DNA of 64,000 nt from Caecitellus pseudoparvulus (lineage: Eukaryota; Protista; Bigyra: Bicosoecida). The stretch spans positions 5,438 through 69,437 of the forward strand of contig CBFFRQ010000071.1 in assembly GCA_965644315.1 (NCBI GenBank). Direction: 5' to 3'. Below are positions 27,499 through 60,831 of this stretch, one piece after another; the first letter of the stretch is position 1; each line of letters begins with the position of its first letter. Under the pieces are notes generated by a model that was not told where the DNA came from, ran no database searches, and worked only from the letters and a program-made list of their open reading frames with translations. Position numbers and translations under genes: made by a program.

Positions 27499-27531
27499 GG
27501 CGCGCACGCCCCAATGCAGAATCCCTCTTCA

Positions 27532-30828: not shown

Positions 30829-33800
30829 TCAAATCAAGTCCTCCAAGCCCTCGAACTTGGCTGCTCGCTGCCTCACCCTATCTGGGATCCTGCGATGCCC
30901 TGTGAGGCCCAGCAGCTCACGCACGATGTCTTTGTGGCCCTCGGCGCATGCCGCTCGGAAGGCGGCCTCAGGCTCCCACACATCCGCCGCGTGCACATCC
31001 ACTGCCCGCGCCCCAGTCAGGCCCAGCAGCTCACGCACGATGTCTGTGTGGCCCTTCTGGCATGCGTATCGGAAAGCGGCCTCGGGTCTACCCCATGCCT
31101 CCGCGTGCACATCCACCTCCCGCGCCCCAGTGAGGCCCAGCAGCTGACGCACGATGTCTGTGTGGCCCCTGGAGCATGCCTCGCGGAAGGCGGCCTCAGG
31201 TCCATCATCATCTTCTGCGTGCACATCCACTTCTTGTGCACCAGTGAGGCCCAGCAGCTCACGCACGATGTCTGTGTGGCCATTGCGGCATGCCCATCGG
31301 AAGGCGGCCTCAGGACCATCCCTATCCGCCGCGTGCACATCCACTGCCCGCGCCCCAGTCAGGCCAAGCAGCTCGCGCACAATGTCTGTGTGGCCTTTCA
31401 AGCAAGCCAATCGGAAGGCAGCCTCAGGTCCACCCCCAGTCGCCGCGTGTACATCCACTGCCCGCGCCCCAGTCAGGCCCAGCAGCTCACGCACGATGTC
31501 TGTGTGGCCATACTCGCATGCCTCTCGGAAGGCGGCCTCAGGTCCACCCCTATCCCTTGCGTGCACATCCACTGCCCGCGCCCCAGTCAGGCCCAGCAGC
31601 TCACGCACGATGTCTGTGAAGCCATACACGCATGCCCATCGGAAGGCGGCCTCAGGCCCATCCTCATCCGCCGCATGCACATCCACTGCCCGCGCCCCAG
31701 TCAGGGCCAGCAGCTCACGCACGATGTCTGTGTGGCCCTCGGCGCATGCCCATCGAAAGGCGGCCTCAGGCCCATCCACATCCGCCGCGTGCACATCCAC
31801 TGCCCGCGCCCCAGTCAGGGCCAGCAGCTCACGCACGATGTCTGTGTGGCCATTAAAGCATGCCCATCGGAAGGCGGCCTCAGGGCCCTGTGTGTGATGC
31901 CCCGGAATGACCTCAACCTCTCCCGCCGCGTGCACATCCACTGCCTCATCCCCCCTCAACGCAAGCAGCTCACGCACCCTCGCAAGCGTACCTTCCTCGC
32001 ACGCATCCACAAATGCAGCCGTGTTCTCATCACTGTAGCAACCCACACCATCGCCCGCCTCTGACTGCACAGCCGATGCTCCCCCCCCATCGACACCCCG
32101 CACTTCACCTGCACCAGCAGCCGCCTGCTCTCCACCAACCACACTCCGCACAGCACTCTCCACACCTCCCAGACACCCAACACCACCCCCACACACCCCA
32201 CACGCCACCGCATATGCACCCATGCACCTACCACTCCCGCCTCGCCCCAACACCTCCATCGCCCCCCACAGTCCATGCTCACCACCTTCACCGCTCCCCA
32301 CGAAGCTTGACACATCACCCGATACACCACCCTCCCCAACACCTCCCACACCAAGCACCTCACGCACCACACCCAACACTCCACCGCCACCACTGCTGCC
32401 ACCACCATAGGCACCTGCACCCCACGCACCCCCACATGCACTCAACACCACCTCACACCCACACCCATCCACCGCCCCCACCAGATTACCCACACTCCCA
32501 CTCCCCACACCCACCACCACAAAGCTTCCCACACCCACGCCGCTCACATCCACCCCGCACGCCTCCGCCACAGCACATGCCCCCAGCACCCGCACAGCCA
32601 CGCGCTGCTTCACACCCACCCCAACATCGCCCCACGCTTCGTCCTCCACGAACGCCCTCAGCGGCCACCCCGCCTCACACTGCACCTGCACTGCGACACT
32701 GCTGCGAACACCCACCGGCTCATCAGCTCGACCAGCTGTACAACTGTGCGCCACCGCTGCCCTGCGTGGAGTCTGCGCCATGCGCGGCAGGCCATGGGCG
32801 ATGCGAGCCGCTTCCCCACGCACCACAGCGCCAACACTCGCGGCAAGCGCTGTCGCACCCACCTCAACGCTTGCTGCCCACTGATCCACATAGTCAGCTC
32901 CTCCAACATCTTCTGCGTCGACATGGCTCCTTGACTGGAACACACTCACACCCACGCCGTTCAGGCACGACAAGCCGCCCGCCAAGTCCAGCCCACACAC
33001 ACCCCTCACCTTCCGACCACTCATCACCGGCGCACCCCCCAACAGCCCACGCAGCTCCTCCACCGCACTCGCAGCACACTCCAGATGCTCCGCAGCACTC
33101 TCACTCCTCAGCTCGCCCGCCGCCTCGCCTCGCAGCCAACCAGCCTGCTGCCGTAGCCCAGCCAGAGCCGCATCCATCGCTGCCTCGCCACCAGCATCAT
33201 GTGTGACAGGACCACTTTCACCAGCCACATCCACATCCGCCACCTCAAAGCCTTGCCACCATCGCGTCAGGTCAGCCAGCGCACCCTCCAACTTCACACC
33301 GCCCCGCACACTGCCCCAAGCACCCACAATGGCGCCCCACAGCGCGCCCCCCTCCGGCACTGCATCCACACTCACACCGCTCGCCGCCTGGCACAGCACA
33401 TCCACCGCGGCGAAGCACCGGAACGACAGGTACTGCAGCGCAGCACACACGTCATCCCGCTCACGCTGCCCCGCCAACGCCCCAGCCTGCTCCAACAGCG
33501 CACCCCCCGCATCACGCAGTGCGCCCTCCAGCTCCACCAGGCTCATGGCACATGGGGCGACGTCCTCTGCAGCAGGCGTCTCGCCTCGCCCAATGGCTGC
33601 CAGTCCTCGCAGTGCTGGGCCGTGCTCCATGACGCTGCCCGGCAGGCACTGCATCTTGCGCAAGCATGCCGCCACCACCTCAGCCTGCGTGCCATGGACG
33701 CCTGCAGTGGCTGCTGCACTGCCTTCCCTGCCTTGCCCTGACGCGGCTGCCTGTGGCGGTGGGGCGAGGGGCGGGGCGCTGTGTGGCATGGTGTGTGGGC

Positions 33801-33866
33801 CATGTGCGCTGTCGCAAGTGCTGGCGATAGTCAGGCGCCATGTCCACACCGCCACCCACGCACCAT
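30829..33866 (-). CDS. Hypervariable ankyrin-repeat protein, copy 1 (N-cap + 9 repeats)
   Basis: ORF 30829..33855; predicted ATG 33866-33864, intron 33863-33751; repeats GPEAAFRxACxxGHTDIVRELLGLTGARAVDVHAADxx. Confidence 0.9.
30898..31887 (-). repeat. 114-bp ankyrin repeat array, 9 units (last partial)
   Basis: gcccagcagctcacgcacgatgtc recurs at 30907, 31021 and onward (period 114). Confidence 0.95.
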
Positions 33867-34530
33867 GGCGATGAATGGCAGGGGGGTCTGCTCAAGCGCC
33901 TAGCCCTGTGCAGCGCGATCCTGCGGTGGGCAGGCAGTGGGCAGGTGTGCTGGCGTGGCGCGGGAGGTGTTGTCGCGGTCTGCGTGGGGGGGCGCAACTT
34001 CCGCACTTGCACCGCCCCGTGCACGCTCACCTGTCGCGGCGGTGCTGCAGGTCAGGCCCCAGGAGCACGCATGTGGCGCAGGTCAAGCATCATGCAGGCG
34101 TGTGCGTGGTGGGTGGTGGGGGAGTAATGTGAGGCACCTGGGCTGTGTGTGTGTGTGGGTGGTCGGGACACCCCCCCCCCACACCCCCCTCCAGCTTGCA
34201 CCCCCCTGACGCAAGTGTCCACAGTCGCCGCCACCGCCATGCTCACCACGGCCATGCCCAGTGTGCTGCACACGAGCACGCAGTGCAACGGGTGTCATGG
34301 CGTGCGGGGTGGCAGGCGGCAGCTTCGGCCACCCTGCGGTGCGGTGGTGTGGGGCTGGTCTGGGCAGTCAGCGGCGGGGCGACAAGTTGCCTGACGACGC
34401 AGGTGTGGTGTGTGGGTCCGGCCGGCGGCGTGGTCGCCCCAGTCGGCCTGTGAGCCGGATGGCGTAGGCAGCAGCAGCACAGGCGGCAGTGGGCGAGTGG
34501 GGGGGGGGGGCCGGCACACAGGACGGTGCA

Positions 34531-34750
34531 GGCGGCGGGGGTGGCGCCAGTGATGTGCATGGTGACGGTGCGGGCGGCGGGGGTGGCGCCAGTGATGTGC
34601 ATGGTGACGGTGCGGGCGGCGGGGGTGGCGCCAGTGATGTGCATGGTGACGGTGCGGGCGGCGGGGGTGGCGCCACTGATGTGCATGGTGACGGGGCGGG
34701 CGGCGGGGGTGGCGCCAGTGATGTGCATGGTGACGGTGCGGGCGGCGGGG
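34531..34750. repeat. 42-bp minisatellite, 5 units (spacer 1)
   Basis: ggcggcgggggtggcgccagtgatgtgcatggtgacggtgcg in tandem. Confidence 0.9.
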
Positions 34751-35032
34751 GCGCTGGCATGGTGCTGGGCGGCGGCAGGGCGGTGTGGCAGGACGCACTC
34801 ACGCCCACGCCCCGCACACGCCCCGCTGCACCACTGTGCCTGCGCCTTGGTGTGGCTGGCCGCCGAGGCCGCAGCACGTGGCTATGCGGCAGCGGCCCCC
34901 GCCACTCTGCGCCATGTGGGCAGTGCTGGGGCACCCTGTGACGTGTAGCAAGGGCGGTCGCCCGAGGGTGGGTGTGTGGTGGGGGGGTGTGCAGGGGGGT
35001 GCATTGGGAGGTGTCCCGACACGCGTGGGGAG

Positions 35033-36358
35033 TCATGGCCGGCGTCGTGGCGGGTGGCGCTGCCGTGCGGGTGCAGGGTGGACAGGGGGGTGAGTTGGAG
35101 GGCGGCAGGTGTGGCAGGGGTGTGTGTGCGGGTGGGGGTGGGGTGGCGGGGTGGCACTGGCGCCCGCTTGTGCGCCCCCCCCCACATGGGCCAAGCGCCT
35201 GGCACGGTCGCGCTGCCGGGCGCCCAGCGGCGCACCACACTGCCACGACTCGCCCCACCTGCATGACACGTGTCCGCATGCTGGGCAGTCCGGGGCGGCG
35301 CCAGGCGGGGCGGCGGCGTGTCGGCCAGGCGCCAAGCAAGCCCCACTGCGGAGCTTGCACCGCACAGCCACCAAGGCATCCGCCGCTGTACAGCCTGCTG
35401 CGCTTTTGGTCGACTTCACGTGCACGACGATGTATTGCCCGGCAGCACGCTCGCCGAGTGCCTCCGCGCCCAAGTCGCCGGTGCGCCGGAGTCGCGGCAC
35501 AAGCGGCACTGACTCCAGCTCGCTCAGTGCGTCGACCAGCCTAGCCGGGTTCACCTGCTCCCTGTGCCCATCCGACTCATCCCCGCCGGAGCCCTCCCCA
35601 CCCACCACACCTGCAACGTCGCTGTCAGTCACCGCCGCAATGCGCCGCGCCAGCTGCTCCGCTGTCGGCGTCCCATCCGCTCCCCGCACCGCTGATGCGT
35701 AGGTGGCCAGAGCGCTGGCCGACAGCGACGCCCTAGCCCGCAGCATGCCCCGCATGGCGGACCTCAAGATGTGCTTGGGTACGCGTCGAGCCGCTGCAGA
35801 GCTCATCGCAGCCGCCCGCCCCACACGGGCCTGTCGTAGCTTGCGCGAGAGAGCGCTGCGCCGAGTGGTCGCAGCGGCGGCGTCCTTGGGCTTGGTCAGC
35901 CGATCCAGCACACGTTCCCGGAGTGCACGGGGCTTCAGCGCCCCAGAGGCTTCTTTGTTTGACGTTTTCAGGGCCTTCAACACTGCCTCCGGCAGCGCGG
36001 CCCTGCCTTGCTTCGCACCGACCGCCGAGTCGGCAACGGGCAACGATCCAGTTTCCGCAGGGTTCCCATCGCCTCCTCCCTCCCCGCTCCGCGCCATGGC
36101 CACCTGGTCTGCCAGCCACTCCTCCCCGTTTAGCCGCAGTAATATCTCTGCTCTAGAGGCCAATCCTGGCGACAGCTGCAGGGCTGACGCTGAGTGCCGA
36201 GCTGTATCGAAGAAGACGACGTTGGTGGCTCCTGCCGCAGCAGCTTCGGCCAACAGACCCTCCAGCTGTGCTCTGCGGGCAGACAGCATGCTGAGGGGGG
36301 CAGGCGCACAGACCAGGGTGTCGGGCCTGACCTCCTGGCCTGACCGCTCCCCCGCCAT
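35033..36358 (-). pseudogene. 3'-truncated paralogue of gene X (ORF still open)
   Basis: MAGERS...APLSMLSARRAQLEGLL...PPGAAPD matches the N-terminus of gene X; similarity fades near 35190. Confidence 0.65.
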
Positions 36359-36620
36359 GGCCCCTCCTGTGTCGGCAGCGGCGGCGGTGTGCGATGCGTT
36401 TCGCTTGATTTCGGAGCGCAGCCAGATCAAGCGACGTGAGGGGGGGGACCTGGCCAACCGCACACCAGCACAAGGCAAGGCACATCGACATGGCATATCC
36501 TTGGTCAGTGCCATGCCAGGGATGTCAATTGTGTCGGGCTCCGCTGGAAGTGGGTGTCCTGAGCTACGGCGTGAGCCAGGTTCGTCACAAGCTGCATTGG
36601 TCTGTGCTTGGTGCCGGGCA

Positions 36621-39205
36621 TCAGATCAAGTGCTTCAAGGTTTCGAACTTAGCGGCTTCCTGCCGCATACTGTCGGGGATCCTGCGATCACCCGTCAGGC
36701 CCAGCAGCTCACGCACGATGTCTGTGTGGCCATACACGCATGCCCATCGGAAGGCGGCCTCAGGTCCACCCCATGCTGCCGCATGCACATCCACTGCCCG
36801 CGCCCCAGTCAGACCCAGCAGCTCACGCACGATGTCTGTGTGGCCCATTCGGCATGCCCATCGGAAGCCCGCCTCAGGTCCATCCTCATCCGCCGCGTGT
36901 ACATCCACTGCCCGCGCCCCAGTCAGGCCCAGCAGCTCACGCACGATGTCTGTTTTGCCCATTGTGCATGCCACTCGAAAGGCGGACTCAGGTCCACCCC
37001 TGTCCGCCGCGTGCACATCCACTGCCCGCGCCCCAGTCAGGCCCAACAGCTCACGCACGATGTCTGTGTGGCCATTGGCGCATGCCACTCGGAAGGCGGC
37101 CTCAGGTCCATACACATCCGCCGCGTGCACATCCACTGCCCGCGCCCCAGTCAGGCCCAGTAGCTCACGCACGATGTCTGTGTGGCCCTTGGCACATGCC
37201 CATCGGAAGGCGGCCTCAGGTCCCTGGCTGTGAAGCCATGTGCTGATCTTAACCTCTCCCGCCGCGTGCACATCCACTGCCTCATCCCCCATCAACGCAA
37301 GCAGCTCACGCACCCTCGCAAGCGTCCCTTCCTTGCACGCCTCCACAAATGCAACCGTGTTCTCATCACTGTAGCTTTCCACAGCAACGCCCGTCTCTGA
37401 CTGTACAACCGATGCTCCCCCCCCATCGACATCCTGCACTTCACCAGCACCAGCAACCGCCTGCTCTCCATCAACCACACTCCGCACAGCACTCTCCACA
37501 CCTTCCAGACACCCAACACCACCCCCACACGCCCCACACGCCACCGCATACGCACCCATGCACCTACCACTCCCGCCTCGCCCCAACACCTCCATCGCCC
37601 CCCACAGTCCATGCTCACCACCTTCACCGCTCCCCACGAAGCTTGACACATCGCCCGACCCACCACCCTCACCAACACCTCCCACGCCAAGCACCTCACG
37701 CACCACACCCAACACTCCACCGCCACCACTGCTACTGCCACCACCACAGGCACCTGCACCCCACACACCCCCACATGCACTCAACACCACCTCACACCCA
37801 CACCCATCCACCGCCCCCACCAGATCACCCACACTCCCACTCCCCACACCCACCACCACAAAGCTCCCCACACCCACACCGCTCACATCCACACCACACG
37901 CCTCCGCCACAGCACATGCCCCCAGCACCCGCACAGCCACGCGCTGCCTCACACCCACCCCAACATCGCCCCACGCTTCATCCTCCACGAACACCCTCAG
38001 CGGCCACCCCGCCTCACACTGCACCTGCACCGTGACACTGCTGCGAACACCAACCGGCTCGTCATCTCGACCAGCTGTACAACTGTGCGCCACCGCTGCC
38101 CTGCGTGGAGTCTGCGCCATGCGCGGCAGGCCACGGGCGATGCGAGCCGCTTCGCCACGCACCACGGCGCCAACACTTGCAGCAAGCGCCCTCGCACCCG
38201 CACCCACACTCCCTGCCCACTGCTCCACATCCTCAGCCCTATCGATATCTTCATCCACGATCTCAACCCGACCACTGTACACACTCACACCCACGCCGTT
38301 CAGGCACGACAAGCCACTCGACAAGTCCAGCCCACCCACACCCCTCACCTTCCGACCACTCATCACCGGCGCACACCCCAACACACCACGCAGCTCCTCC
38401 ACCGCACTCGCAGCACACTCCAGATGCTCCGCAGCACTCTCACTCCTCAGCTCGCCCGCCGCCTCGCCTCGCAGCCAACCAGCCTGCTGCCGTAGCCCAG
38501 CCAGAGCCGCATCCACCGCTGCCTCGCCACCAGCATCATGTGTGAGTGGGCTACTCTCACAAGCCACATCCACATCCGCCACCTCAAAGCCTTGCCACCA
38601 TCGCGTCAGGTCAGCCAGCGCACCCTCCAACTTCACACCGCTCCGCACACTGCCCCAAGCACCCACAATGGCACCCCACACTGCGCCCCCCTCCGGCACT
38701 GCATCCACACTCACACCGCTCCCCGCCTGGCACAGCACATCCACCGCGGCGAAGCACCGGAACGACAGGTACTGCAGCGCAGCACACACGTCATCCCGCT
38801 CACGCTGCCCCGCCAACGCCCCAGCCTGCTCCAACAGCGCACCCCCCGCATCACGCAGTGCGCCCTCCAGCTCCACCAGGCCCATGGCACATGGGGCGAC
38901 GTCCTCTGCAGCAGGCGTCTCGCCACGCCCAATGGCTGCCAGTCCTCGCACTGCTGGGCCGTGGTCCATGACGCTGCCCGGCAAGCACTTCATCTTGCGC
39001 AAGCATGCCGCCGTCACCTCAGCCTGGGTGCCATGGACGCCTGCAGTGGCTGCTGCACTGCCTTCCCTGCCTTGCCCTGACGCGGCTGCCTGTGGCGGTG
39101 GGGCGAGGGGCGGGGCGCTGTGTGGCATGGTGTGTGGGCCATGTGCGCTGTCGCAAGTGCTGGCGATAGTCAGGCGCCATGTCCACACCGCCACCCACGC
39201 ACCAT
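36621..39205 (-). CDS. Hypervariable ankyrin-repeat protein, copy 2 (N-cap + 5 repeats at 36690-37223)
   Basis: ORF 36621..39194; ATG 39205-39203, intron 39202-39090. Confidence 0.9.
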
Positions 39206-40195
39206 GGCGATGAATGGCAGGGGGGTCTGCTCAAGCGCCTAGCCCTGTGCAGCGCGATCCTGCGGTGGGCAGGCAGTGGGCAGGTGTGCTGGCGTGGCGC
39301 GGGAGGTGTTGTCGCGGTCTGCGTGGGGGGGCGCAACTTCCGCACTTGCACCGCCCCGTGCACGCTCACCTGTCGCGGCGGTGCTGCAGGTCAGGCCCCA
39401 GGAGCACGCATGTGGCGCAGGTCAAGCATCATGCAGGCGTGTGCGTGGTGGGTGGTGGGGGAGTAATGTGAGGCACCTGGGCTGTGTGTGTGGGTGGTCG
39501 GGACACCCCCCCCACACCCCCCTCCAACTTGCACCCCCCTGACGCAAGTGTCCACAGTCGCCGCCACCGCCATGCTCACCACGGCCATGCCCAGTGTGCT
39601 GCACACGAGCACGCAGTGCAACGGGCGTCATGGCGTGCGGGGTGGCAGGCGGCAGCTTCGGCCACCCTGCGACGCGGTGGTGTGGGGCTGGTCTGGGCAG
39701 TCAGCGGCGGGGCGACAAGTTGCCTGACGACGAAGGTGTGGTGTGTGGGTCCGGCCGGCGGCGTGGTCGCCCCAGTCGGCCCGTGAGCCGGATGGCGTGG
39801 GCAGCAGCAGCACAGGCGGCAGTGGGCGAGTGGGGGGGGGGGGCGGCACACAGGACGGTGCAGGCGGCGGGGGTGGCGCCAGTGATGTGCATGGTGACGG
39901 TGCAGGCGGCGGGGGCGCTGGCATGGTGCTGGGCGGCGGCAGGGCGGTGTGGCAGGACGCACTCACGCCCACGCCCCGCACACGCCCCGCTGCACCACTG
40001 TGCCTGCGCCTTGGTGTGGCTGGCCGCCGTGGCCGCAGCACGTGGCTATGCGGCAGTGGGCCTCACCACAGTGCGCCATGGCGGCAGTGCTGGGGCACCC
40101 TGTGACGTGTAGCAAGGGCGGTCGCCCGAGGGTGGGTGTGTGGTGGGGGGGTGTGTGGCGTGTGCATTGGGAGGTGTCCAGACACGCGTGGGGAG

Positions 40196-50347: not shown

Positions 50348-50351
50348 CGAG

Positions 50352-52433
50352 ATGGCATCGGATGATCCAGCTTCCAGCGACACGGAGGGCGGAAGCTGGG
50401 AGGACATCCACGACAAAATGATGTCTGTCAACTCCGCCAAGCAAGCCAAGGCGCTCATAACGGAGCAGGAGTTCGAGTACTGGCTGAAGTGGGCGGATTC
50501 TGAGGATTTTGGTAAGATGGAGGCCGCTTGGCGCCTCCGGGAGGTGCCCGAGGGATTCCGGGCAGATCGCATGCGATCCCTCATTGCGGGCAGAGCTTTC
50601 CGCCTCCCCGCTGACGGTGCCCCTCATCGCGCAGGCGGCTCACCACGGGGGCACGGCACGAAGCGAACCCGTCCGCGCGGTGCGAGCAGTGGCACGCCCT
50701 ACGGCCCGCACCTACCCCCGCGCCCGACCCAGCCGGACGCAGTCGCAGGCGACCTCCCGCAAGATCCCGCCACAGTGCTTACGTGGTTCCTGCAGAGGGG
50801 AGCGACGGTGCCGAGCGAGGACGTCGCCGTGCAGCTGCAGTTCTACGTGGGCTTGGCAACGGAGGAGACATCGCCGTACGCCCTCTCCGCTTGGCCTCCA
50901 CGGCGCTTCGCCGCATGGTGCAGACTCAACGGTATTCCCCCCGACCTCACCCCCGACGACATCGTGATGCATTTGCAGCGGGTCCTGGAGGCCGCGCTGG
51001 CGGGCGACGACGACTTTGGCGACGACGATGCCGGCGCCCCGTTCTTTCCCGTTTTCCCGGGCACCACACCGGATGCCGCCCGGTTACAGCCCCGTGCGGC
51101 GGCCCCGGGTCACCCCCGGCCTCCAAGAGGCACAGGGCGGCCTATAGCCCGCAGCCCCCCTCCCCCGTGGGGCGGCGGAGCCTCGCCGGCAGTCCACCCC
51201 GAAGGCGGGTCGGCTGTTTTCGGTCACATGGGGGAGAACAGCGGTCGGTCGTCGCCAGCCGACGAGGTACTGGTCACTGTAGGCGCGCTGCGGGTCATTG
51301 GGCCGACCGCACACCCCTCGTCGGCGGTGGCCCGGGACCGCCTGTCAGCCTTGGGGGCAGTTTTCGCTGCGGGGACCACAGACGCCTTGACCACGGTGGC
51401 TGTCGAGATGGCTGAGGCTGCTGCACGAGAGGTGCCCGCAGCAACGGGCCCAGTGCCGTCAGGTACGTTCCTGTCCCGCCAGCTCCCCCCCCACTCGCCC
51501 CGCGTGCCCGCTCCCGGCGACCCGTCCTGGCTCACAGCCCCCGGCGATGAGGTAGCCCCGCCGTCCGCGTCGGTCATGATGGACGACGCTATGGACGTAG
51601 TGACTGCTGTACGCCTGGTGCAAGGGAGGGTGGAAGTTACAGTTGACCCAACCCATCTAGTGGCAGTAACTGGGGCGGGTGCCCTGTCGGCATGCCACAT
51701 GCTGGGCAACCGTGGGGGCGCTTGGTGGCTTGCTGCGATGACCAGGGACTTGCTGACGGCGCCTTCCGACGACCTCCACCGCTCCCTCCGAGCGTTCTGG
51801 TGGAAGTGGGCGTCCGAGGTGCCCGCCCTGGCAGACCAGCGGGGCCTGTGCCGAGCCATGGCGTGCGCACTCCTGATCACAATCGCAGTGCGGGCCGTGG
51901 CGCAGACCGCCGCTGCGTTGCCCGAAGGCCAGCGCAGGCGATGGGCCCAGCTGACGTGGGCCTCCTGGGTGGCCACGTTCCGCACTAACGCCACCATTGT
52001 CATGATGGCGTCGGCGACGGGGCAAGCACTGGTGGCCAGCTCGCTGGCGCGCGAGGCATGGGCGGCCGGGGCCGCCGCCACACCGATGCCAGGTGCGGGG
52101 GGCGGCCCGGCGCAAACCCCCGCTCGTGGCCCTCCCGCGGGGCTGTACCGGCAGGACGACCCGAGCACATTCGTGTGGTGCCCCGGGTGCGTCGGATCCG
52201 ACCGGCGGCGCCGGTCGCTGGCATCCTGCCCACGCCTGGCCCAGCATGTGGCCCACCTGCGCCGGACCCACACAGTCGGAGGTAAGCCCGCAGAACTTAC
52301 CCAGGCGCAGGCAGTGGCCATGCTGGTGCGCCAGTGGGAGCGGAAGGTGGCATCCAAGGGACGTGACTTCCAGCGGCGCATGCAGCCCCGCGCTGTCACC
52401 ACGGCCATGGTGGAGGCAGCTCTCAGCCTCTAG
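50352..52433 (+). CDS. Retrotransposon ORF1 (gag-like by position) with Cys/His cluster near the C-terminus
   Basis: ORF 50298..52433, first ATG after A1 at 50352; WCPGC...SCPRLAQHVAHLRRTH. Confidence 0.75.
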   Translation: MASDDPASSDTEGGSWEDIHDKMMSVNSAKQAKALITEQEFEYWLKWADSEDFGKMEAAWRLREVPEGFRADRMRSLIAGRAFRLPADGAPHRAGGSPRGHGTKRTRPRGASSGTPYGPHLPPRPTQPDAVAGDLPQDPATVLTWFLQRGATVPSEDVAVQLQFYVGLATEETSPYALSAWPPRRFAAWCRLNGIPPDLTPDDIVMHLQRVLEAALAGDDDFGDDDAGAPFFPVFPGTTPDAARLQPRAAAPGHPRPPRGTGRPIARSPPPPWGGGASPAVHPEGGSAVFGHMGENSGRSSPADEVLVTVGALRVIGPTAHPSSAVARDRLSALGAVFAAGTTDALTTVAVEMAEAAAREVPAATGPVPSGTFLSRQLPPHSPRVPAPGDPSWLTAPGDEVAPPSASVMMDDAMDVVTAVRLVQGRVEVTVDPTHLVAVTGAGALSACHMLGNRGGAWWLAAMTRDLLTAPSDDLHRSLRAFWWKWASEVPALADQRGLCRAMACALLITIAVRAVAQTAAALPEGQRRRWAQLTWASWVATFRTNATIVMMASATGQALVASSLAREAWAAGAAATPMPGAGGGPAQTPARGPPAGLYRQDDPSTFVWCPGCVGSDRRRRSLASCPRLAQHVAHLRRTHTVGGKPAELTQAQAVAMLVRQWERKVASKGRDFQRRMQPRAVTTAMVEAALSL

Positions 52434-54652
52434 GAGGTGGGCCGGAGCGCGGTGGTGAGAGCGACCACGGGGTACCGGGCCGTGCCCGTGGAGTGGAGGG
52501 CTGCCGCCCCGCTCTCGACAGACCACCGCGCCATGGCCGTGCTCATCGAATCAACGGTCCAGCAGCTGCATGGGGACCGTTGTTGGACTCCACCGGGGCT
52601 CTTCGAGGACATCTTGCGTGGGGGCTTGGACTGGGGCCCCCACCCCGTGGTCTCATACTGGGGTTGCCAGGAGGCCCACGCTGACGTGTGTCCCGCATGC
52701 GGCGAGACCACTTCCAGATTACGGCAGCTTGAGCGGTGCGCAGCCATGCGACTGCTCACCGTGGTCACGCTGCGCGGGTGGGACCCCGCTTGGCTGCTGT
52801 TCCGCCGCCCCCCGGCAGCGGCATCCCCGTCCTCGGCATACGTGCTGCAGCCGCACGACGAGCGGGCGGTGGCAGCGGCCTATGACGCCTTCGCGGCTGC
52901 GCGCGTGCTGCAGCCGGTCACCCCCCAGCAGCTGCAGCAGCACCGAAAGATGGGGGGGCCAGCCGCTTCTGCCTTCGTTGTCACGACATGGGCCCCCCAG
53001 CCGGGCGTCAGCGACGAAGCTCTGCGACAGTGGGCTGCTGCGAACCCAGGCGAGGCGGTGCAGGCCGCCAGCTCTTCCCGCGCGCCCGCCCGCCCGAGCC
53101 GCCTGTTCCGGGCCAAGCAGCGGGTGGTGTACGATCTGGCAGCCGTCAACCAGGCCTCAGTGAGCCCCCCATTCCACTACCCCACGCTGGAGAGCTGGGC
53201 GCTGCGCCTCCCGCCGAACTCGGACTGTGTTGTCCTGGACGTGGAAGCAGGGTACACGGCCATCCCCATCGCTCCGTCGGGCGCCGGACTGTTCACCATG
53301 CTCGCCCAGGGCAGGCCAGCCTTCCGCATGCTTCGGATGGCCTTCGGGTACAGCCCGGCCGGGGCCATTTTCTGCTTTTTTTCTGGACTTCTGGGCGCCA
53401 AGATCGAAGCGGCGTTCCCAGCAGGGCATGTGGTTGTGTACGTAGACGACGTCGGGCTTGGGGGAGCTACGTTGGGGCCACGGCCATCGATCGTGCCCAA
53501 GATAACTCAACTGTTCGAGGACGTGGGCTTCCGGGTGTCGCGCAAGAAGACGCAAGGGCCACAGCGCGTCGTTCAGTACTTGGGGATGGTGGTCAGGTGT
53601 GCCCCGTGTGGGGTGTACCTTGAGTGTCCTCAAGCCAAACGAACTCAGCTGCGGTGGCAGCTGGCCGCGGTCCTTAATCGCCTCGGCGCTTGCTCCACCA
53701 TCCCCAAGCGCGTTTTCGCCGCGGTCACAGGGCGCTTGCACGGCCTGTCGGCCGTGGTGCCCCACGCAAAACAAACGCTGTCGCTCTTGTACGACACCAT
53801 GCGCACACACAAGTACCGCGTCGGCCCCCCGGCGCTCTCGTGCCTGTCCCCCCGGCGTCGCACGGGGCCCTGCGGACCCTCCTTGAGGCCCTCGGTGGGC
53901 CGTTATCGACGGGCCCGATGCGCCCGCTCTCCCCACTGTCAAGCAGGTGGCGCGCCGCCCTCTTTGGCTCGTGCGACGCGTCGGGGGAAGGCGGGCTGGG
54001 GGCAACAGTGTCGAGGTGGGCAGGGCCAGGAGAACGCACAGACTCCGCTTGGTACGCGTCCATGCGCATCCCCGGCACAGCCCCGGGCGAGGAGCTCGTG
54101 GGAGCCTCCACGATGCTGGAGCTGTACGCAATCGCCTTGGCTATGGCAATGGCGCGGCATGTTTTTCCCGAGCCGGGGCCGCTGCTGCTATGCCTAGCTG
54201 CGGACAGCCAGGCAGCGGTGGCGCTGGCGCGACGAGGGTACAGCAAGCACAGCCGTGAACTCACGCGCGTCTGCGGGGTCCTCGAGCGGGTTTCCCGCGT
54301 TTTGGACGTCCACTTGGCGCCTCGGTGGATCCCGAGGAGCCTGAATTGGCGGGCGGACGCCCTCAGCCACCCCGAAAGGGTGGATAGCAGCACACCGGCA
54401 GCGCTCGGCCTCCCGCCAGGGCAACCAGCCGAGCTGGAGGTATCAGCAGGGGGAAGCAGCGCCGCTGAGCGGTGGCATGATGTGTCCCTAGACGTAGGGC
54501 CGTCGGGAAAGGCCGGGGCGGGCACCGCGTGGATTCACTCAGCTCAACTCTCCGTCGCCCTGCACAGACACACTCTGGATAAGGAAGCAGACCTTCTGGC
54601 AGATGATCAGGGCCATCCCCGCGTCCCCGATCAGCAGGATTCACCAACATAG
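52434..54652 (+). CDS. Retrotransposon pol: reverse transcriptase + DIRS-type RNase H (1-nt frameshift near 53825-53830)
   Basis: RT motifs RVVYDL, VLDVEAGY, RMAFGYSPA, YVDD, KKTQGP..QYLG. RNase H motifs CDASG, MLELYAI, ADSQAA, WIPRSLNWRADALS lie in the -1 frame. Confidence 0.9.
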
Positions 54653-55472
54653 GCTGGCAAAGGGGACGGTGGTCAAGTACGTTCGCGCGGTTGCTGGCCT
54701 GATCAGGGCCGCTCCAGCACCCCGGGACAGGGCGCGGACCATGGTGGGCATCTTAACGGGCGGCGTGGCCGCAGGCAGATGGGCCCCCCATCGGGCGAAG
54801 CAGATCCTGGCGCAATGGGTCGGTGGTTTTAGGTATCTGGGCCTGCCAATCCCGTCGCTAGCCCCGCTGGGGCTCACAGTCGGCAGCATCTGCCGGGCAA
54901 TCCGCCGGCTCCACCGAGGGAGAGGGGAGCAACACCGCCGCCCTATCAGCAAAGAACAAGTCATGGAGGCCATGAAGCGGGCATGGGACGGGCCACACCT
55001 CGGGAGGCATGCCCCAACTGCCGCCGCAGCTATCTACATCGGCTTTCATGGCATGTGCAGGCCGGGAGAGCTCCGGGGCCTGCGATGGGAGGAGTTGCAC
55101 TTCGGGCGGGCGGGCCCCCTGCAGTGGGTGGAGGCCAGGGTCACGGATAAAACGCACCTGAGTGCAAACCGCCACATCCAGGTGGTGCGCCAGGCCGAGT
55201 GGGCGGGGGCCTTCGACCGCCTCCGGGAGCAGGCCCGGGACAAGCGGGGAAGCCTGCTCCCAAGGTGGGCGTGGCTCAGCCTGCAAGGCATCCTGAAGGC
55301 TGTAGCGGGCGTGTCCTTGGCCCACCTGAGACCCGGGGGCAATATGTTCTGGACAGGCCGGGCCCCCGACGTCTTGGTGGAGCACGCGGCGGGCTGGGCG
55401 GCTGGCTCCCCCACCCGGGCACGATACTACACCCAGGGGGGGAGGGGGCGAGGCTGTGGCACGAGGCCATGA
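54603..55472 (+). CDS. Tyrosine recombinase of the retrotransposon
   Basis: GFHGMCRPGEL (R), TDKT (K), AHLRPGG (HxR), AAGW (W), RARYY (Y); overlaps the pol 3' end. Confidence 0.9.
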   Translation: MIRAIPASPISRIHQHRLAKGTVVKYVRAVAGLIRAAPAPRDRARTMVGILTGGVAAGRWAPHRAKQILAQWVGGFRYLGLPIPSLAPLGLTVGSICRAIRRLHRGRGEQHRRPISKEQVMEAMKRAWDGPHLGRHAPTAAAAIYIGFHGMCRPGELRGLRWEELHFGRAGPLQWVEARVTDKTHLSANRHIQVVRQAEWAGAFDRLREQARDKRGSLLPRWAWLSLQGILKAVAGVSLAHLRPGGNMFWTGRAPDVLVEHAAGWAAGSPTRARYYTQGGRGRGCGTRP

Positions 55473-55503
55473 CACCCAGGGGAGGAAGCAAGCATTGAAA
55501 AGT

Positions 55504-55992
55504 ATTGGCGGGTGCCGCAAGGAGGCGTCCCCTCCCCCAAGAGATGCAGCGAGCCCTGGTGGCCGCTGGCATAGAGGGGGGAGGGGACGGCCTCGAGGCG
55601 GGCCCAGTTCAATGCATTTCGATTGCCACGCACAACGCACCAACACGAGGGAACCGAGGTTGCCGGCACCCCAGCCGGCAACCATGTTTCCCGGCAGGAG
55701 GGGCGGCGGGCAGTCCCACGCTAGTGGCACAATTGTCCCCCGCCGCCCCAACGCAGAGTAGACGACGGCAGGACCGGGCATGACAAAACCAGTCATTAGC
55801 CGGCCTCGTCACTCTCTTTCCTTTTTTTTTCTTTTTCTCGATTGGCGGGTGCCGCAAGGAGGCGTCCCCTCCCCCAAGAGATGCAGCGAGCCCTGGTGGC
55901 CGCTGGCATAGAGGGGGGAGGGGACGGCCTCGAGGCGGGCCCAGTTCAATGCATTTCGATTGCCACGCACAACGCACCAACACGAGGGAACC
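55504..55992 (+). repeat. Terminal B1-A2-B2 repeats
   Basis: 152-bp B (attggcgggtgccgcaagg...cacgagggaacc) occurs twice, flanking A2. Confidence 0.95.
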
Positions 55993-56210: not shown

Positions 56211-57536
56211 TCATGGCCGGCGTCGTGGCGGGTGGCGCTGCCGTGCGGGTGCAGGGTGGACAGGGGGGTGAGCTGGAGGGCGGCAGGTGTGGCAGGGGTG
56301 TGTGTGCGGGTGGGGGTGGGGTGGCGGGGTGGCACTGGCGCCCGCTTGTGCGCCCCCCCCCACATGGGCCAAGCGCCTGGCACGGTCGCGCTGCCGGGCG
56401 CCCAGCGGCGCACCACACTGCCACGACTCGCCCCACCTGCATGACACGTGTCCGCATGCTGGGCAGTCCGGGGCGGCGCCAGGCGGGGTGGCGGCGTGTC
56501 GGCCAGGCGCCAAGCAAGCCCCACTGCGGAGCTTGCACCGCACAGCCACCATGGCATCCGCCGTTGTGCAGCCTGCTGCGCTCTTGGCCGACTTCACATG
56601 CGCCACGATGTATTGCCCGGCAGCACGCTCGCAGAGTGCTTCCGCGTCCAAGTCGCCATTGCGCCGGAGTCGCGGCACAAGCGGCACTGACTCCAGCTCG
56701 CTCAGTGCGGCGGCCAGCCTAGCCGGGTTCACCTGCTCTCTGTGCCCATCACACTCATCCCCGCCGGAGCCCTCCCCAGCCACCACACCTGCAACGTCGC
56801 TGTCAGCCACCCCCGCAATGCGCCGCGCCAGCTGCTCCGCTGTCGGCGTCGCATCCGCTCCCCGCACCGCTGATGCGTATGTGGCCAGAGCGCTGGCAGA
56901 CGGCGACGCCCTAGCCCGCAGCATGCCCCGCATGGCAGACCGCAGGATGTGCTTGGGTACGCGTCGAGCCGCTGCAGAGCTCATCGCAGCCGCCCGCCCC
57001 ACACGGGCCTGCCGCAGCTTGCGCGAGAGAGCGCTGCGCCGAGTGGTCCCAGCGACGGCATCCTTCGGCTTGGTCAGCCGATCCAGCACACGTTCCCGGA
57101 GTGCACGGGGCTTCAGCGCCCCAGAGGCCTCTTTGTTTGACGCGTGCAGAGCCTTCAACTCTGCCTCTGGCAGCGCGGCCTTGCCTTGCTTAGCACCGAC
57201 CGCCGAGTCGGCAACGGGCAACGATCCAGTTTCCGCACCGCCCCCCTCGCCGCCCCCTTCCCCGCTCCGCGCCATGGCCACCTGGTCTGCCAGCCACTCC
57301 TCCCCATCCAGTCGCAGTAATGCCTCTGCCCTGGATGCCAGCCCTGCCCACAGCTCCAGGGCTGACGCTGAGTGCCGAGCTGTATCGAAGGAGACGACGT
57401 TGGTGGCTCCTGCCGCAGCAGCCTCGGCCAGCAGGCCCTCCAGCTGTGCTCTGCGGGCAGACAGCATGCTGAGGGGGGCAGGCGCACAGACCAGGGTGTC
57501 GCGCCTGCCCTCCTGGCCTGACCGCTCCCCCGCCAT
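56211..57536 (-). pseudogene. 3'-truncated paralogue of gene X (ORF still open)
   Basis: ORF 56211..57692 with the X-homologous ATG at 57536. Confidence 0.65.
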
Positions 57537-57798
57537 GGCCCCTCCTGTGTCGGCAGCGGCGGCGGTGTGCGATGCGTTTCGCTTGATTTCGGAGCGCAGC
57601 CACATCAGGCGACGTGAGGGGGGGGACCTGGCCAACCGCACACCAGCACAAGGCAAGGCACATCGACATGGCATACTCTTGGTCAGTGCCATGCCAGGGA
57701 TGTCAGTTGTGTCCGGCTCCGCTCGAAGTGGGTGTCCTGAACCACGGCGTGAGCCAGGTTCGTCAAATGGTGCATTGGCCTGTACTTGGTGCCGGGCA

Positions 57799-60700
57799 TC
57801 AGATCAAGTGTTTCAAGGTTTCGAACTCAGCGGCTTCCTGCCGCACACTGTCGGGGATCCTGCGATCACCCGTCAGGCCCAGCAGCTCACGTACGATGTC
57901 TGTGTGGCCCTTGCGGCATGCCCATCGGAAGGCGGCCTCAGGTCCACCCCTATCCGCCGCGTGTACATCCACTGCCCGCGCCCCAGTCAAGCCCAGCAGC
58001 TCACGCACGATGTCTGTGCGGCCCGTGGCGCATGCCTCTCGGAAGGCGACCTCAGGCCCACCCCATGCCGCCGAGTGCACATCTACTGCCCGCGCCCCAG
58101 TCAGGCCCAGCAGCTCACGCACGATGTCTGTGTGGCCGCAGTAGCATGCCCATCGGAAGGCGGACTCAGGTCCAAACCCATCCGCCGCGTGCACATCCAC
58201 TGCCCGCGCCCCAGTCAGGCCCAGCAGCTCACGTACGATGTCTGTGTGGCCATTCTCGCATGCCCCTCGGAAGGCGGCCTCAGGTCCATCCCATGCCGCC
58301 GCATGCACATCCACCTCTCGCGCCCCAGTCAGGCCCAGCAGCTCACGCACGATGTCGCTGCGACCCCAGCGGCATGCGGCTCGAAAGGCGGCCTCAGGTC
58401 CTTCATCATCCGCCGCGTGCACATCCACCTCTCGCGCCCCAGTCAGGCCCAGCAGCTCACGCACGATGTCTGTGCGGCCATTCTCGCATGCCCATCGGAA
58501 GGCGGACTCAGGTCCATCATCATCCGCCGCGTGCACATCCACTGCCCGCGCCCCAGTCAGGCCCAGCAGCTCACGCACGATGTCTGTGTGGCCCAAGCGA
58601 CATGCCCATCGGAAGGCGGCCTCAGGTCCAAGCGCATCCGCTGCGTGCACATCCACTGCCCGCGCTCCAGTCAGGCCCAGCAGCTCACGCACGATGTCTG
58701 TGTGGCCTTCGCGGCATGCCCATCGGAAGGCGGCCTCAGGTCCATCCTCATCCGCCGCGTGCACATCCACTGCCCGCGCCCCACTCAGGCCCAGCAGCTC
58801 ACGCACGATGTCTGCGTGGCCATTGAAGCATGCCCATCGGAAGGCGGCCTCAGGTCCCTGGCTGTGAAGCCATGTGCTGATCTTAACCTTTCCCGCCGCG
58901 TGCACATCCACTGCCTCACCCCCCCTCAACGCAAGCAGCTCACGCACCCTCGCAAGCTCTCCTTCCTTGCACGCATCCACAAAGGCAACCGTGTTCTCAT
59001 CACTGTAGCTTCCCACACCAACGCCCGTCTCTGACTGCCCAGCCGATGCTCCCCCCTCATCGACACCCTGCACTTCACCTGCACCACCAGCACCCGCCTG
59101 CTCTCCATCGACCACACTCCGCACAGCACTCTCCACACCTCCCAGACACCCAACACCACCCCCACATGCACCACACGCCACCGCATACGCACCCATGCAC
59201 CTACCACTCCCGCCTCGCCCCAACACCTCCATCGCCCCCCACAACCCATGCTCACCACCTCCACCGCTCCCCACGAAGCTTGACACATCACCCGATCCAC
59301 CACCCTCCCCAACACCTCCCACACCAAGCACCTCACGCACCACACCCAACGCTCCACCCTCACCACCACCAACGCCACCACCACAGGCACCTCCACCCCA
59401 CACACCCCCACATGCACTCAACACCACCTCACACCCACACCCATCCACCGCCCCCACCAGATCACCCACACTCCCACTCCCCACACCCACCACCACAAAG
59501 CTCCCCACACCCACACCCCCCACATCCACACCACACGCCTCCGCCACAGCACATGCCCCCAGCACCCGCACAGCCACGCGCTGCCTCACACCCACCCCAA
59601 CATCGCCCCACGCTTCATCCTCCACGAACACCCTCAGCGGCCACCCCGCCTCACACTGCACCTGCACCGTGACACTGCTCCTCTCGCCAACTGGCTCATC
59701 TGCTCGGCCACCAAAGACTCCATGTGCCAGTGCTGCTTTGTGTGGAGTCTGCGCCGCTCGCGGCAGTCCATAGGCGATGCGAGCCGCTTCAACACGCTTC
59801 ACAGCCCCAACACTCGTGACAAGCGCCCTCGCACCTGCCGCCACATATGTTGCCCACTGCTCCACATCCCCACCTCCACCCACATCCTCATCCACGATCT
59901 CAACCCGCCCACTGTACACACTCACACCCACGCCGTTCAGGCACGACAAGCCACTCGACAAGTCCAGCCCACACACAGCCCTCACCTTTCGACCACTCAT
60001 GACCGGCGCGCACCCCAACAGACCACGCAGCTCCTCCACCGCACTCGCAGCACACTCCAGATGCTCCGCAGCACTCTCACTCCTCAGCTCACCTGCCGCC
60101 TCGCCTCGCAGCCACTCAGCTTGCTGACGCATGCCAGCCAGAGCCGCATCCGTCGCTGCCTCGCCACCAGCATCATGTGTGAGTGGGCTACTCTCACAAG
60201 CTACATCCACATCCGCAACCTCGAAGCCTTGCCACCATCGCGTCAGGTCAGCCAGCGCACCCTCCAAGTTCACTCCGGCCCGCACATTGCTCCAAGCACC
60301 CACGATGGCGCCCCACAGTGCGTCACCCTCCGGCACGGCACTCACACCGCTCGCCGCCTGATGCAGCACATCCACCGCGCAGAAGCACCGGAACGACAGG
60401 TACTGCAGCGCAGCACACACACCACCTCGCTCATGCTGCCCCGCCAACAGCCCAGCTTGCTCCAACAGCGCTCTCCCTGCCTCACGCAGTGCAGCCTCCA
60501 GCTCCGCCAGGCTCATGCCCGATGGGGCGTCGCCCGTTGCAGGCAAATCGCCACGCCCAATGGCTGCCAGTCCCCGCACTGCTGGGCCGTGCTCCATGAC
60601 GCTGCCCGGCAGACACTTCATTTTGGCCAAGCATGCCGCCACCACCTCAGCCTGTGTGTCAACAATGCCTGCAATGGCTGCTGCACTGCCCTCCATAGCT

Positions 60701-60831
60701 TGTCCTGTTGCTGCTGCCTGTGGCGTTGGGGAGGGGCAGGGCGCTGTGTGCAGTGGTGTGTGTGCGACACGCTCTGGCGCAAGTGCTGGCGACAGTGAGG
60801 TGCCGTGCCCACACCAACGCCCACGCACCAT
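57799..60831 (-). CDS. Hypervariable ankyrin-repeat protein, copy 5 (N-cap + 9 repeats at 57868-58857; most divergent N-terminus)
   Basis: ORF 57799..60846; ATG 60831-60829, intron 60828-60718. Confidence 0.9.
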   Translation of the reverse strand: MVRGRWCGHGTSLSPALAPERVAHTPLHTAPCPSPTPQAAATGQAMEGSAAAIAGIVDTQAEVVAACLAKMKCLPGSVMEHGPAVRGLAAIGRGDLPATGDAPSGMSLAELEAALREAGRALLEQAGLLAGQHERGGVCAALQYLSFRCFCAVDVLHQAASGVSAVPEGDALWGAIVGAWSNVRAGVNLEGALADLTRWWQGFEVADVDVACESSPLTHDAGGEAATDAALAGMRQQAEWLRGEAAGELRSESAAEHLECAASAVEELRGLLGCAPVMSGRKVRAVCGLDLSSGLSCLNGVGVSVYSGRVEIVDEDVGGGGDVEQWATYVAAGARALVTSVGAVKRVEAARIAYGLPRAAQTPHKAALAHGVFGGRADEPVGERSSVTVQVQCEAGWPLRVFVEDEAWGDVGVGVRQRVAVRVLGACAVAEACGVDVGGVGVGSFVVVGVGSGSVGDLVGAVDGCGCEVVLSACGGVWGGGACGGGVGGGEGGALGVVREVLGVGGVGEGGGSGDVSSFVGSGGGGEHGLWGAMEVLGRGGSGRCMGAYAVACGACGGGVGCLGGVESAVRSVVDGEQAGAGGAGEVQGVDEGGASAGQSETGVGVGSYSDENTVAFVDACKEGELARVRELLALRGGEAVDVHAAGKVKISTWLHSQGPEAAFRWACFNGHADIVRELLGLSGARAVDVHAADEDGPEAAFRWACREGHTDIVRELLGLTGARAVDVHAADALGPEAAFRWACRLGHTDIVRELLGLTGARAVDVHAADDDGPESAFRWACENGRTDIVRELLGLTGAREVDVHAADDEGPEAAFRAACRWGRSDIVRELLGLTGAREVDVHAAAWDGPEAAFRGACENGHTDIVRELLGLTGARAVDVHAADGFGPESAFRWACYCGHTDIVRELLGLTGARAVDVHSAAWGGPEVAFREACATGRTDIVRELLGLTGARAVDVHAADRGGPEAAFRWACRKGHTDIVRELLGLTGDRRIPDSVRQEAAEFETLKHLI

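Follow-up and report, generated by a model that had tools for sequence, protein, structure and literature searches.

The window analyzed here, 64,000 nt of forward-strand DNA from the protist Caecitellus pseudoparvulus (assembly GCA_965644315.1, contig CBFFRQ010000071.1, positions 5,438 to 69,437), contains a tandem array of five paralogous genes, designated A to E, each of which joins a large N-terminal domain (N-domain) to a C-terminal series of ankyrin repeats that share a nearly constant framework and are hypervariable at five codons. The five open reading frames (ORFs) lie on the minus strand between window positions 30829 and 60846, and each consists of a single exon. We consider it probable that the locus is a lineage-restricted tandem cluster encoding a germline recognition repertoire, most likely one used in biotic conflict. 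A role in non-self recognition is plausible by analogy with the fungal systems considered below.

Tandem Repeats Finder identified 114-bp tandem arrays in all five ORFs, with scores of 467-1429 and 84-91% matches. At the protein level, the DIVR anchor of the repeat recurred at a spacing of exactly 38 residues, occurring 9, 5, 4, 3, and 9 times in A to E, respectively, for a sum of 30. All five products also matched the Pfam Ank_2 model at 42.5-200.9 bits (cut-off, 27.3 bits), with E values from 1e-10 to 4e-60. These three lines of evidence, which go far beyond chance, bear out a first-pass annotation, made from the DNA letters and their translations, that had described five paralogous ORFs with these same copy numbers of a 114-bp/38-aa repeat. 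Each protein additionally contains a diverged N-terminal capping repeat, and the final unit is a half repeat that passes after 27 columns into a conserved C-terminal tail. The tail (R-R-I-P-D ... K-F-E-x-L-K-x-L-I) makes up the 22 C-terminal residues of ORFs A-E (for example, 30832-30897) and is kept in homologues down to 39% identity (P0001-P0003); it could be a motif for docking or sorting. The ORFs had also been called intact, which is correct insofar as none is interrupted by a stop codon. An ATG start is available at codon 23 in A and B and at codon 6 or 51 in E, but in C and D the first ATG is at codon 70, within the first conserved helix, and there is none 5' of the conserved domain.

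We aligned the repeats in the 38-column frame x-G-P-E-A-A-F-R-x-A-C-x-x-G-H... and defined as framework the 29 columns that remain after setting aside five hypervariable (HV) and four moderately variable columns. Amino acid entropy was 2.2-3.0 bits at the HV columns (1, 9, 12, 13, and 38); columns 15, 16, 36, and 37 were intermediate (0.8-1.1 bits), and values for the remaining columns were close to 0. The entropy peaks coincide with the three variable windows noted in the first-pass annotation, namely the residue after AFR (column 9), the dipeptide after AC (columns 12-13), and the loop before GPE (columns 36-38 and 1). Although the five HV columns represent only 13% of the repeat length, they account for 61% of the pairwise amino acid differences (80% for all nine variable columns), and repeats share 95% of residues in the framework vs. 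16% at the HV columns. The five-residue HV signature is unique in all 25 complete repeats, and no two of the 30 units are identical in DNA. When each repeat was compared with its nearest neighbor, 3.3% of framework bases differed, compared to 50% of the bases in the five HV codons. The earlier description of the framework as almost invariant in DNA corresponds to this 3.3% divergence from the nearest neighbor and to a mean framework divergence of 6.5%. In 70 repeats from nine distant homologues, columns 9, 12, 13, and 36 were again the most variable, and contigs from independent assemblies (L004 and L005) carry the matching repeat type with different variable codons.

The repeats are ankyrin repeats, as had been proposed, judging from the Pfam matches, the AlphaFold model of the gene A ankyrin domain (pLDDT 89, pTM 0.86), and Foldseek comparison of this model with the PDB. 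The last of these returned 203 matches at E <= 0.001 (best E, 1.5e-9), headed by extended designed ankyrin repeat proteins (DARPins), NOMPC, ankyrin-1, and espin. In the model, columns 5-13 of each unit form helix 1 and columns 16-23 form helix 2, and column 37 is joined to column 2 of the following unit by a beta-bridge, so that columns 38 and 1 would form the two-residue tip of the beta-hairpin. Columns 9, 12, and 13 are helix 1 residues with a spacing of i, i+3, and i+4, which puts them on a single helical face. The predicted secondary structure therefore agrees with the first-pass placement of the variation at the beta-hairpin tip and helix 1.

Alignment to consensus-designed ankyrin with HMMER equated columns 37, 38, 1, and 2 with consensus positions 1, 2, 3, and 4 (Gly), column 3 with position 5, column 9 with position 10, columns 12 and 13 with positions 13 and 14, and column 36 with position 33. 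Positions 2, 3, 5, 13, 14, and 33 are those randomized in DARPin libraries, as reportedly described by Binz et al. in 2003. Relative to this set, four of the five HV columns align with randomized positions (2, 3, 13, and 14), as the annotation had largely anticipated, and the fifth aligns with position 10, one helical turn ahead of 13/14. The array proteins and DARPins thus have in common a near-identical framework with variation restricted to the hairpin and to the end of helix 1; the array is natural, keeps position 5 fixed as Pro, and has the extra variable site at consensus position 10. At exactly 38 aa, the unit is longer than the canonical ~33, and the consensus alignment places one of the additional residues in the hairpin and four behind helix 2. 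Relatives also have 34-aa units. The 38-aa unit is a length variant that is compatible with membership in the ankyrin superfamily. Many ankyrin-only proteins from NCBI and JGI (among them P0013, P0014, P0016, P0020, and P0022) share the repeat subtype (A-F-R-x-A-C ... V-D-V-H-A) in units of 34 aa, without the hairpin extension of four residues; within this wider ankyrin subfamily, the unit of 38 aa is derived.

Nei-Gojobori counts over all pairs of repeats gave nonsynonymous (dN) and synonymous (dS) divergences of 1.10 and 0.40 at the HV codons and of 0.024 and 0.18 in the framework. In a tree-free comparison of 12 disjoint nearest pairs, the proportion of nonsynonymous differences (pN) at HV codons, 0.587, exceeded both the proportion of synonymous differences (pS) in the framework (0.115; Fisher p 2e-25) and that at the HV codons themselves (0.344; p 0.018). 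We also fitted site models using a self-written Goldman-Yang codon model on an IQ-TREE topology. M2a was preferred over M1a (likelihood ratio test statistic, 88.2; p 7e-20), with an omega of 5.9 on 13.7% of sites and a posterior of 1.0 at exactly columns 1, 9, 12, 13, and 38. By all three approaches dN/dS at the variable codons is well above 1, and the fast diversification suggested for these codons is upheld.

The variation might instead stem from targeted mutagenesis of the HV codons, either template-directed in the manner of diversity-generating retroelements (DGRs) or through local hypermutation, rather than from selection acting on ordinary mutations. Synonymous divergence at the HV codons is ~2-3 times that of the framework, and a reverse transcriptase gene is located inside the array, both of which would fit such a process. 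The reverse transcriptase, however, is part of a retrotransposon that has split direct repeats of its own, and every 114-bp copy lies inside the five genes, leaving no separate copy to serve as template. Moreover, all four bases are used at codon positions 1 and 2 of the HV codons, where change is not confined to adenines, and nonsynonymous change exceeds synonymous change within these codons. DGR-type mutagenesis was rejected given the lack of a template repeat, the lack of adenine specificity, and the retrotransposon origin of the reverse transcriptase, and we regard targeted mutagenesis in general as very unlikely.

Framework divergence was 6.8% within genes and 6.3% between genes, and the paralogues are mosaic. 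Copy E is only 72-84% identical to the others over its first 200 residues, where it is the most diverged copy, and 95-100% identical beyond, and copy A has a diverged patch of its own at residues 280-360. Equal framework divergence within and between genes, together with the mosaic paralogues and repeat numbers ranging from 3 to 9, points to unequal recombination and gene conversion, accompanied by selection for novelty at a few codons. Within the N-domain, residues 280-400 of ORFs A-E (for example, 32650-33010) show 62-85% identity between paralogues vs. 95-100% in the flanks. This segment corresponds to predicted N-lobe-like strands and a long helix, and both dN and dS are raised in it, a sign either of gene conversion acting in patches or of a further variable region.

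In this GC-rich DNA (65-70% GC), either strand contains long ORFs that arise by chance, among them a 915-aa antisense ORF at 56287-59034, and short-read relatives of the array break within the repeats, as in L004. Both observations could be taken to mean that the array is an artefact of assembly or annotation, made up of collapsed or misjoined repeats or of chance ORFs. It is in the minus frame only, however, that we found the Pfam matches, the homologues, and purifying selection on the framework (pN 0.02 vs. pS 0.16); moreover, all 30 units differ, and arrays of like kind are present in two independent assemblies. An artefactual origin is, in our estimation, most improbable. The long antisense ORFs were themselves rejected as genes, since they match no family and their substitution pattern is the wrong one.

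Upstream of the repeats, each ORF encodes ~620 residues, with a conserved core of ~520 aa. A database search with ORF C retrieved P0001, at 74% identity and 92% coverage, and ten further proteins at 37-59% identity that covered 75-94% of the ORF, and a 15-sequence alignment contained invariant motifs throughout the ~520 residues. Insertions and deletions (indels) within the ORFs of A-D were all multiples of 3, whereas those upstream of the ORFs were not, and copy E has a compensating pair of 1- and 2-nt indels near its start. Protein conservation, the in-frame indels, and a confident AlphaFold model ruled out the possibility that this upstream stretch, which is GT-rich and looks low in complexity, is an intron or a chance ORF. 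A profile search of 1.84 billion cluster representatives returned 20 proteins, 19 of them with E values below 1e-30, and no relative of the family was found among the JGI metagenome contigs and IMG/VR viral contigs that were scanned. The N-domain had no match in Pfam (to an E value of 5), in PADLOC, or, by sequence, in the PDB. Judging from these sequence comparisons, the N-domain is a real domain that is confined to one lineage and was previously undescribed.

The AlphaFold model of the gene C N-domain (pLDDT 81, pTM 0.82) comprises a helical part (residues 8-225) and an alpha/beta part (residues 237-536). When we searched two fold libraries with Foldseek, protein kinases and pseudokinases made up the great majority of the top 50 matches, albeit with weak scores (E, 0.014-0.9; TM, 0.2-0.42). 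Matches included PINK1, GCN2, MLKL, and the JAK1 pseudokinase, as well as giant-virus kinases in the second library. Neither an HxDxxxxN motif nor a conserved DFG was found among the N-domain family members, and we rejected both an active kinase and a P-loop in the N-domain because the required motifs are not conserved. The model thus suggests a domain that is weakly kinase-like and, if so, catalytically dead. The first-pass annotation had seen no NACHT or NB-ARC domain in these proteins. Consistent with this, there was no Pfam match outside the ankyrin models, a Walker A motif was lacking, and the fold matches were to kinases rather than to signal transduction ATPases with numerous domains (STAND ATPases).

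Relatives from metagenomes combine the N-domain with different partners. In P0011 it is fused to Sel1 repeats (36 aa), and P0046 also has Sel1 repeats, with a much weaker N-domain match (E 1.4e-4); the P0046 repeats are fairly uniform, with a few variable columns. P0012 consists of the N-domain and a repeat-poor tail that is coiled-coil-like by eye, and in P0040 the N-domain lies behind an N-terminal extension of 1100 residues. A relative on a metagenome contig (L001) is likewise followed by a second family member. At the end of contig L004, from an assembly labeled Symbiodinium sp. KB8, the start region of a family member appears to be followed within 90 bp by the ankyrin cap (13908-14719), with most of the N-domain missing; the NCBI gene model merges this member with an ABC transporter named YCF1. 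This short member is probably the result of assembly collapse or annotation fusion.

For the repeats of fungal NOD-like receptors (NLRs), Dyrka et al. (2014; PMC4986451) required an identity between repeats of 85% or more across 100 aa or more. With an offset of 38 aa, identity in the best 100-aa window was 0.87 in A, 0.86 in B, 0.85 in C, and 0.88 in E, with D being too short for the comparison. Fungal NLR ANK, TPR, and WD40 repeats (Podospora HET-E/D/R, the NWD genes, and the Pa_3_8560 ANK locus; PMC4986451) likewise have internal identities of at least 85%, vary in number, and evolve in concert within and between paralogues, the comparison here being among paralogues with 9, 5, 4, 3, and 9 repeats. 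The fungal ankyrin repeats also have about five positively selected positions per repeat, located on the inner helices and on the hairpin loop of the concave face. Modularity is a further likeness: the N-side is paired with ANK or Sel1 here and with ANK, TPR, or WD40 in fungal NLRs. In contrast to fungal NLRs, the array proteins have neither NACHT/NB-ARC nor any other P-loop NTPase, one new domain of 520 aa makes up their N-side, the repeat unit is 38 rather than 33 aa, and the host is a stramenopile-like protist rather than a fungus. The annotation had recognized the signature of HET-E/HET-D-type repeats. Four of the five genes reach the fungal level of identity, but HET-E and HET-D carry WD40 repeats and the array genes carry ankyrin. 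More generally, the array family shares with the NLR/STAND layout a C-terminal superstructure of repeats (ankyrin, or Sel1 in P0011 and P0046) that would act as the sensor. Lacking the defining NTPase, it is not an NLR family. A limited literature search found no description of such repeats outside fungi.

Candidate receptors of the LRR-ROCO (leucine-rich repeat-ROCO) and NB-ARC-TPR types in Ectocarpus (PMC3341825) are also from a stramenopile, have shuffled, fast-evolving repeats, and were proposed to form a recognition repertoire. Unlike these, the array genes are intronless, carry ankyrin repeats, and have no switch domain. The Ectocarpus repeats, as Zambounis et al. reportedly described in 2012, occupy one exon each and are diversified by exon shuffling, with GTPase or NB-ARC domains as switches. 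A kinase-like fold is combined with a solenoid or helical bundle in one chain in RIPK4/ANKK1, ILK, RNase L, and MLKL, and in this respect the array proteins may resemble them. The array proteins have no kinase-family sequence match and no conserved VAIK, HRD, or DFG, and are at most candidate members of that group. The occurrence of kinases or pseudokinases with ankyrin repeats in ordinary signaling is nevertheless in keeping with the view that the array encodes housekeeping adaptors, in which the ankyrin face recruits a diversified endogenous protein family to the N-domain and the paralogues have subfunctionalized. Ankyrin domains are general protein-protein adaptors, and the PDB matches also include tankyrase, FEM1B, MIB1, and the ILK ankyrin domain. 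Stable paralogues would not be expected to show an omega of ~6, near-random residues at five positions in a 95% identical framework, and ongoing homogenization, nor does a family that is limited to a single lineage and has 20 clusters in a set of 1.84 billion proteins look like a housekeeping component. We think that this explanation is unlikely.

The ankyrin effectors of Wolbachia-type bacteria and large DNA viruses are likewise families that expand and diversify in host-parasite conflict, although they are encoded by the parasite and delivered to the host, whereas the array family resides in a eukaryotic genome beside AATF, DDHD, and DHHC genes. Diversifying selection on a binding face is silent as to the side of the conflict on which a protein acts, since an arms race leaves an equal signature on both. 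The array genes could accordingly be offensive effectors or adaptors of a predatory or parasitic flagellate, directed against proteins of prey, host, or competitor, as in intracellular bacteria and poxviruses. Rapidly evolving ankyrin families of Wolbachia are cited in PMC4986451, and the organism is found with other cells (a Symbiodinium culture assembly and seawater). No signal peptide, hydrophobic N-terminus, or membrane segment was seen in the array proteins, however, with a maximum Kyte-Doolittle 19-residue mean of 1.77 that falls within a short beta-strand. The repeats are also fused to a large, conserved, intracellular-looking module, and no secretion machinery or delivery context was evident. 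We give this offensive role about the same low likelihood as housekeeping.

A recognition repertoire, in our favored interpretation, might work as follows. The protein, predicted to be soluble, has an N-module of ~520 aa, in which an alpha/beta part comes after a helical bundle, and a C-terminal ankyrin solenoid of 4-10 units. Each unit displays five HV residues, two at the hairpin tip and three on one face of helix 1, so that a 9-repeat protein presents ~45 variable residues and each paralogue presents a different surface. The concave ankyrin face may bind variable ligands, and the N-module may convert binding into a signal or effect. Diversity would be generated by duplication of a 5-kb unit; by the gain, loss, and shuffling of 114-bp units via unequal recombination; by gene conversion, which would homogenize the framework within and between genes; and by strong diversifying selection on the five codons. 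The partner in the conflict could be a virus, a parasite, prey, or conspecific non-self, and the system would resemble fungal NLR sensor repeats minus the NTPase switch. A more specific version, which we put forward tentatively and hold to be possible rather than probable, is that these proteins constitute an undescribed class of germline intracellular immune receptors in heterotrophic marine stramenopiles, in which a pseudokinase-like module replaces the NTPase switch and hypervariable ankyrin or Sel1 repeats, evolving in concert, act as sensors for viruses or parasites.

Several observations weigh against this interpretation. No recognized signaling or death domain was identified, and the kinase-like similarity of the N-domain is weak: the catalytic Lys, an HRD-type loop, and DFG are absent among the invariant columns of the 15-sequence alignment, and none of 16 family members has a Walker A motif, meaning that there is no conserved P-loop. 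Because the repeats recombine, the site model's assumption of a single tree does not hold, making the pair test the safer result. Synonymous divergence is raised at the HV codons (0.31-0.34 vs. 0.12-0.16), and part of the pattern may therefore come from a mutational process that acts locally or from old variation shielded from conversion. The assignment of the variable residues to one surface derives from predicted secondary structure, helical periodicity, and the consensus-ankyrin alignment rather than from coordinates. Finally, some copies may be in decay, given that no upstream ATG is present in C and D.

The array has grown by duplication of a unit of ~5 kb, which comprises the ankyrin gene, ~550 bp upstream of it, and the first 1.26 kb of a neighboring gene, gene X, the sole full-length copy of which lies downstream of gene A (Table 1). 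Units A-D are contiguous, and a 5.8-kb retroelement separates D from E. The four partial gene X copies are open ORFs of 441-736 aa with new C-termini, one of which enters a proline-rich 42-bp tandem repeat. A 42-bp tandem repeat is also present between units, 5' of the ankyrin genes, at 34522-34751, 44898-45161, and 50009-50107 (2.4-5.5 copies, 92-97% matches). The split direct repeats of the retroelement are arranged in the order A1 ... B1-A2-B2, which is typical of DIRS/Ngaro-type elements, and their complete identity argues for a recent insertion; Pfam recognized no recombinase domain in the element.

Table 1. Positions of the array genes, duplication units, and associated elements in the window
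Feature	Positions	Strand	Remarks
Gene A	30829-33855	minus	N-domain, N-terminal cap, and 9 ankyrin repeats of 38 aa; 1008 aa; Pfam Ank_2 E 3.9e-60; AlphaFold pLDDT 89
Gene A, repeats	30865-31890	minus	
Gene A, ankyrin domain	30832-32004	minus	
Gene A, N-domain	32020-33714	minus	
Gene B	36621-39194	minus	Layout as A, 5 repeats; 857 aa
Gene B, repeats	36657-37226	minus	
Gene B, ankyrin domain	36624-37340	minus	
Gene C	41785-44250	minus	Layout as A, 4 repeats; 821 aa
Gene C, repeats	41821-42276	minus	
Gene C, ankyrin domain	41788-42390	minus	
Gene C, N-domain	42406-44103	minus	
Gene D	46995-49355	minus	Layout as A, 3 repeats; 786 aa
Gene D, repeats	47031-47372	minus	
Gene D, ankyrin domain	46998-47486	minus	
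Gene E	57799-60846	minus	Layout as A, 9 repeats; 1015 aa
Gene E, repeats	57835-58860	minus	
Gene E, ankyrin domain	57802-58974	minus	
Gene E, N-domain	58987-60699	minus	
Duplication unit, reference copy	29415-34400	minus	Ankyrin gene, upstream DNA, and 5' part of gene X
Duplication unit, other copies	35206-39732; 40369-44783; 45580-49888; 56384-61002		Self-BLAST, 83-94% identity
Gene X, full length	27532-30678	minus	1048 aa; no Pfam match
Gene X, partial copies	35033-36514; 40196-41521; 44678-46888; 56211-57692		Truncated/chimeric ORFs
Retroelement	50172-55992	plus	711-aa ORF
Reverse-transcriptase ORF	52437-54197	plus	Pfam RVT_1
Split direct repeat A1	50172-50347		100% identical
Split direct repeat B1	55504-55655		100% identical
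Split direct repeat A2	55654-55829		100% identical
Split direct repeat B2	55841-55992		100% identical

The tandem amplification, the fast turnover, the copies without a good start codon, and the transposable elements in and near the array could together suggest a selfish or drive family (killer-antidote or incompatibility) that expands and diversifies through intragenomic conflict, and genes for heterokaryon incompatibility are indeed among the closest fungal analogues (PMC4986451). Pfam and PADLOC searches revealed no toxin-like domain, however, and the persistence of distant paralogues at 37-60% identity indicates long-term maintenance. We consider such an origin quite unlikely, less so than mutagenesis by a narrow margin of judgment only, and continue to favor a recognition repertoire.

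The array lies beside ordinary eukaryotic genes, including AATF, a DDHD lipase-type gene, and a DHHC palmitoyltransferase gene, each a single ORF, and a glycerol-3-phosphate dehydrogenase gene with at least three introns. GC content is 57-73% across the window and 63-72% in the array. The 1027-aa ORF at 19948-23031 (plus strand) weakly matches C-type lectin and is hydrophobic in a segment close to its C-terminus, and it contains a 36-bp tandem repeat (21607-22304, 18.6 copies) that encodes a Ser/Thr/Ala-rich, mucin-like region; from its predicted sequence, the product looks like a surface glycoprotein. A DDE transposase-like ORF (DDE_Tnp_4) is located at 235-2142 on the minus strand, and a single ORF of 2659 aa with a weak laminin-G-like match is located at 7837-15816 on the plus strand, both of them upstream of the array. 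Scanning the window with Rfam and for tRNA genes gave no hits.

The nearest named record to the AATF gene of the window is the AATF of "Symbiodinium sp. KB8," at 94%, and contig CAJNDU010012524.1 of the KB8 assembly (GCA_905221625.1, with contigs L003 and L004) is syntenic with window positions 22259-28306 at 93-96.5% identity. A Symbiodinium origin was rejected: the DNA is GC-rich with long single-exon genes, and no other Symbiodinium AATF clusters with that of the window. For the largest exon ORF of the dehydrogenase gene, the best-scoring named matches were from stramenopiles (Cafeteria, oomycetes, brown algae, and Nannochloropsis) at 50-53%, and no dinoflagellate was among the 120 matches listed. 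Together with the eukaryotic neighboring genes, these matches agree with the first-pass attribution of the DNA to a protist. We infer from the sequence comparisons that the KB8 contigs come from a co-cultured marine stramenopile-like protist that contaminates the assembly, and some NCBI proteins named Symbiodinium are probably misassigned. DNA with 96% identity is present in ENA metagenome ERZ23499096 and also in SRR8404393, a Mariana Trench seawater metagenome (PMC7265257). For users of public data, the finding thus exposes DNA of a protist within an assembly labeled Symbiodinium sp. KB8.

We conclude that the hypervariable ankyrin repertoire is real and well supported and that it represents an evolutionary design already known, here carried by a protein family that is new and whose function we infer to be recognition. 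Near-identical repeats with a few HV surface codons are known mainly from fungal NLRs. The appearance of a like design in an unrelated protist, with no NTPase switch, would be a convergent route to recognition diversity, one in which the NOD module is dispensable. The 520-aa N-domain is a new domain that is now open to characterization, and the 38-residue ankyrin unit provides a natural scaffold with a ready map of tolerant positions. For heterotrophic marine flagellates, whose defenses against giant viruses and parasites are almost unknown, the array offers a candidate innate-recognition family.

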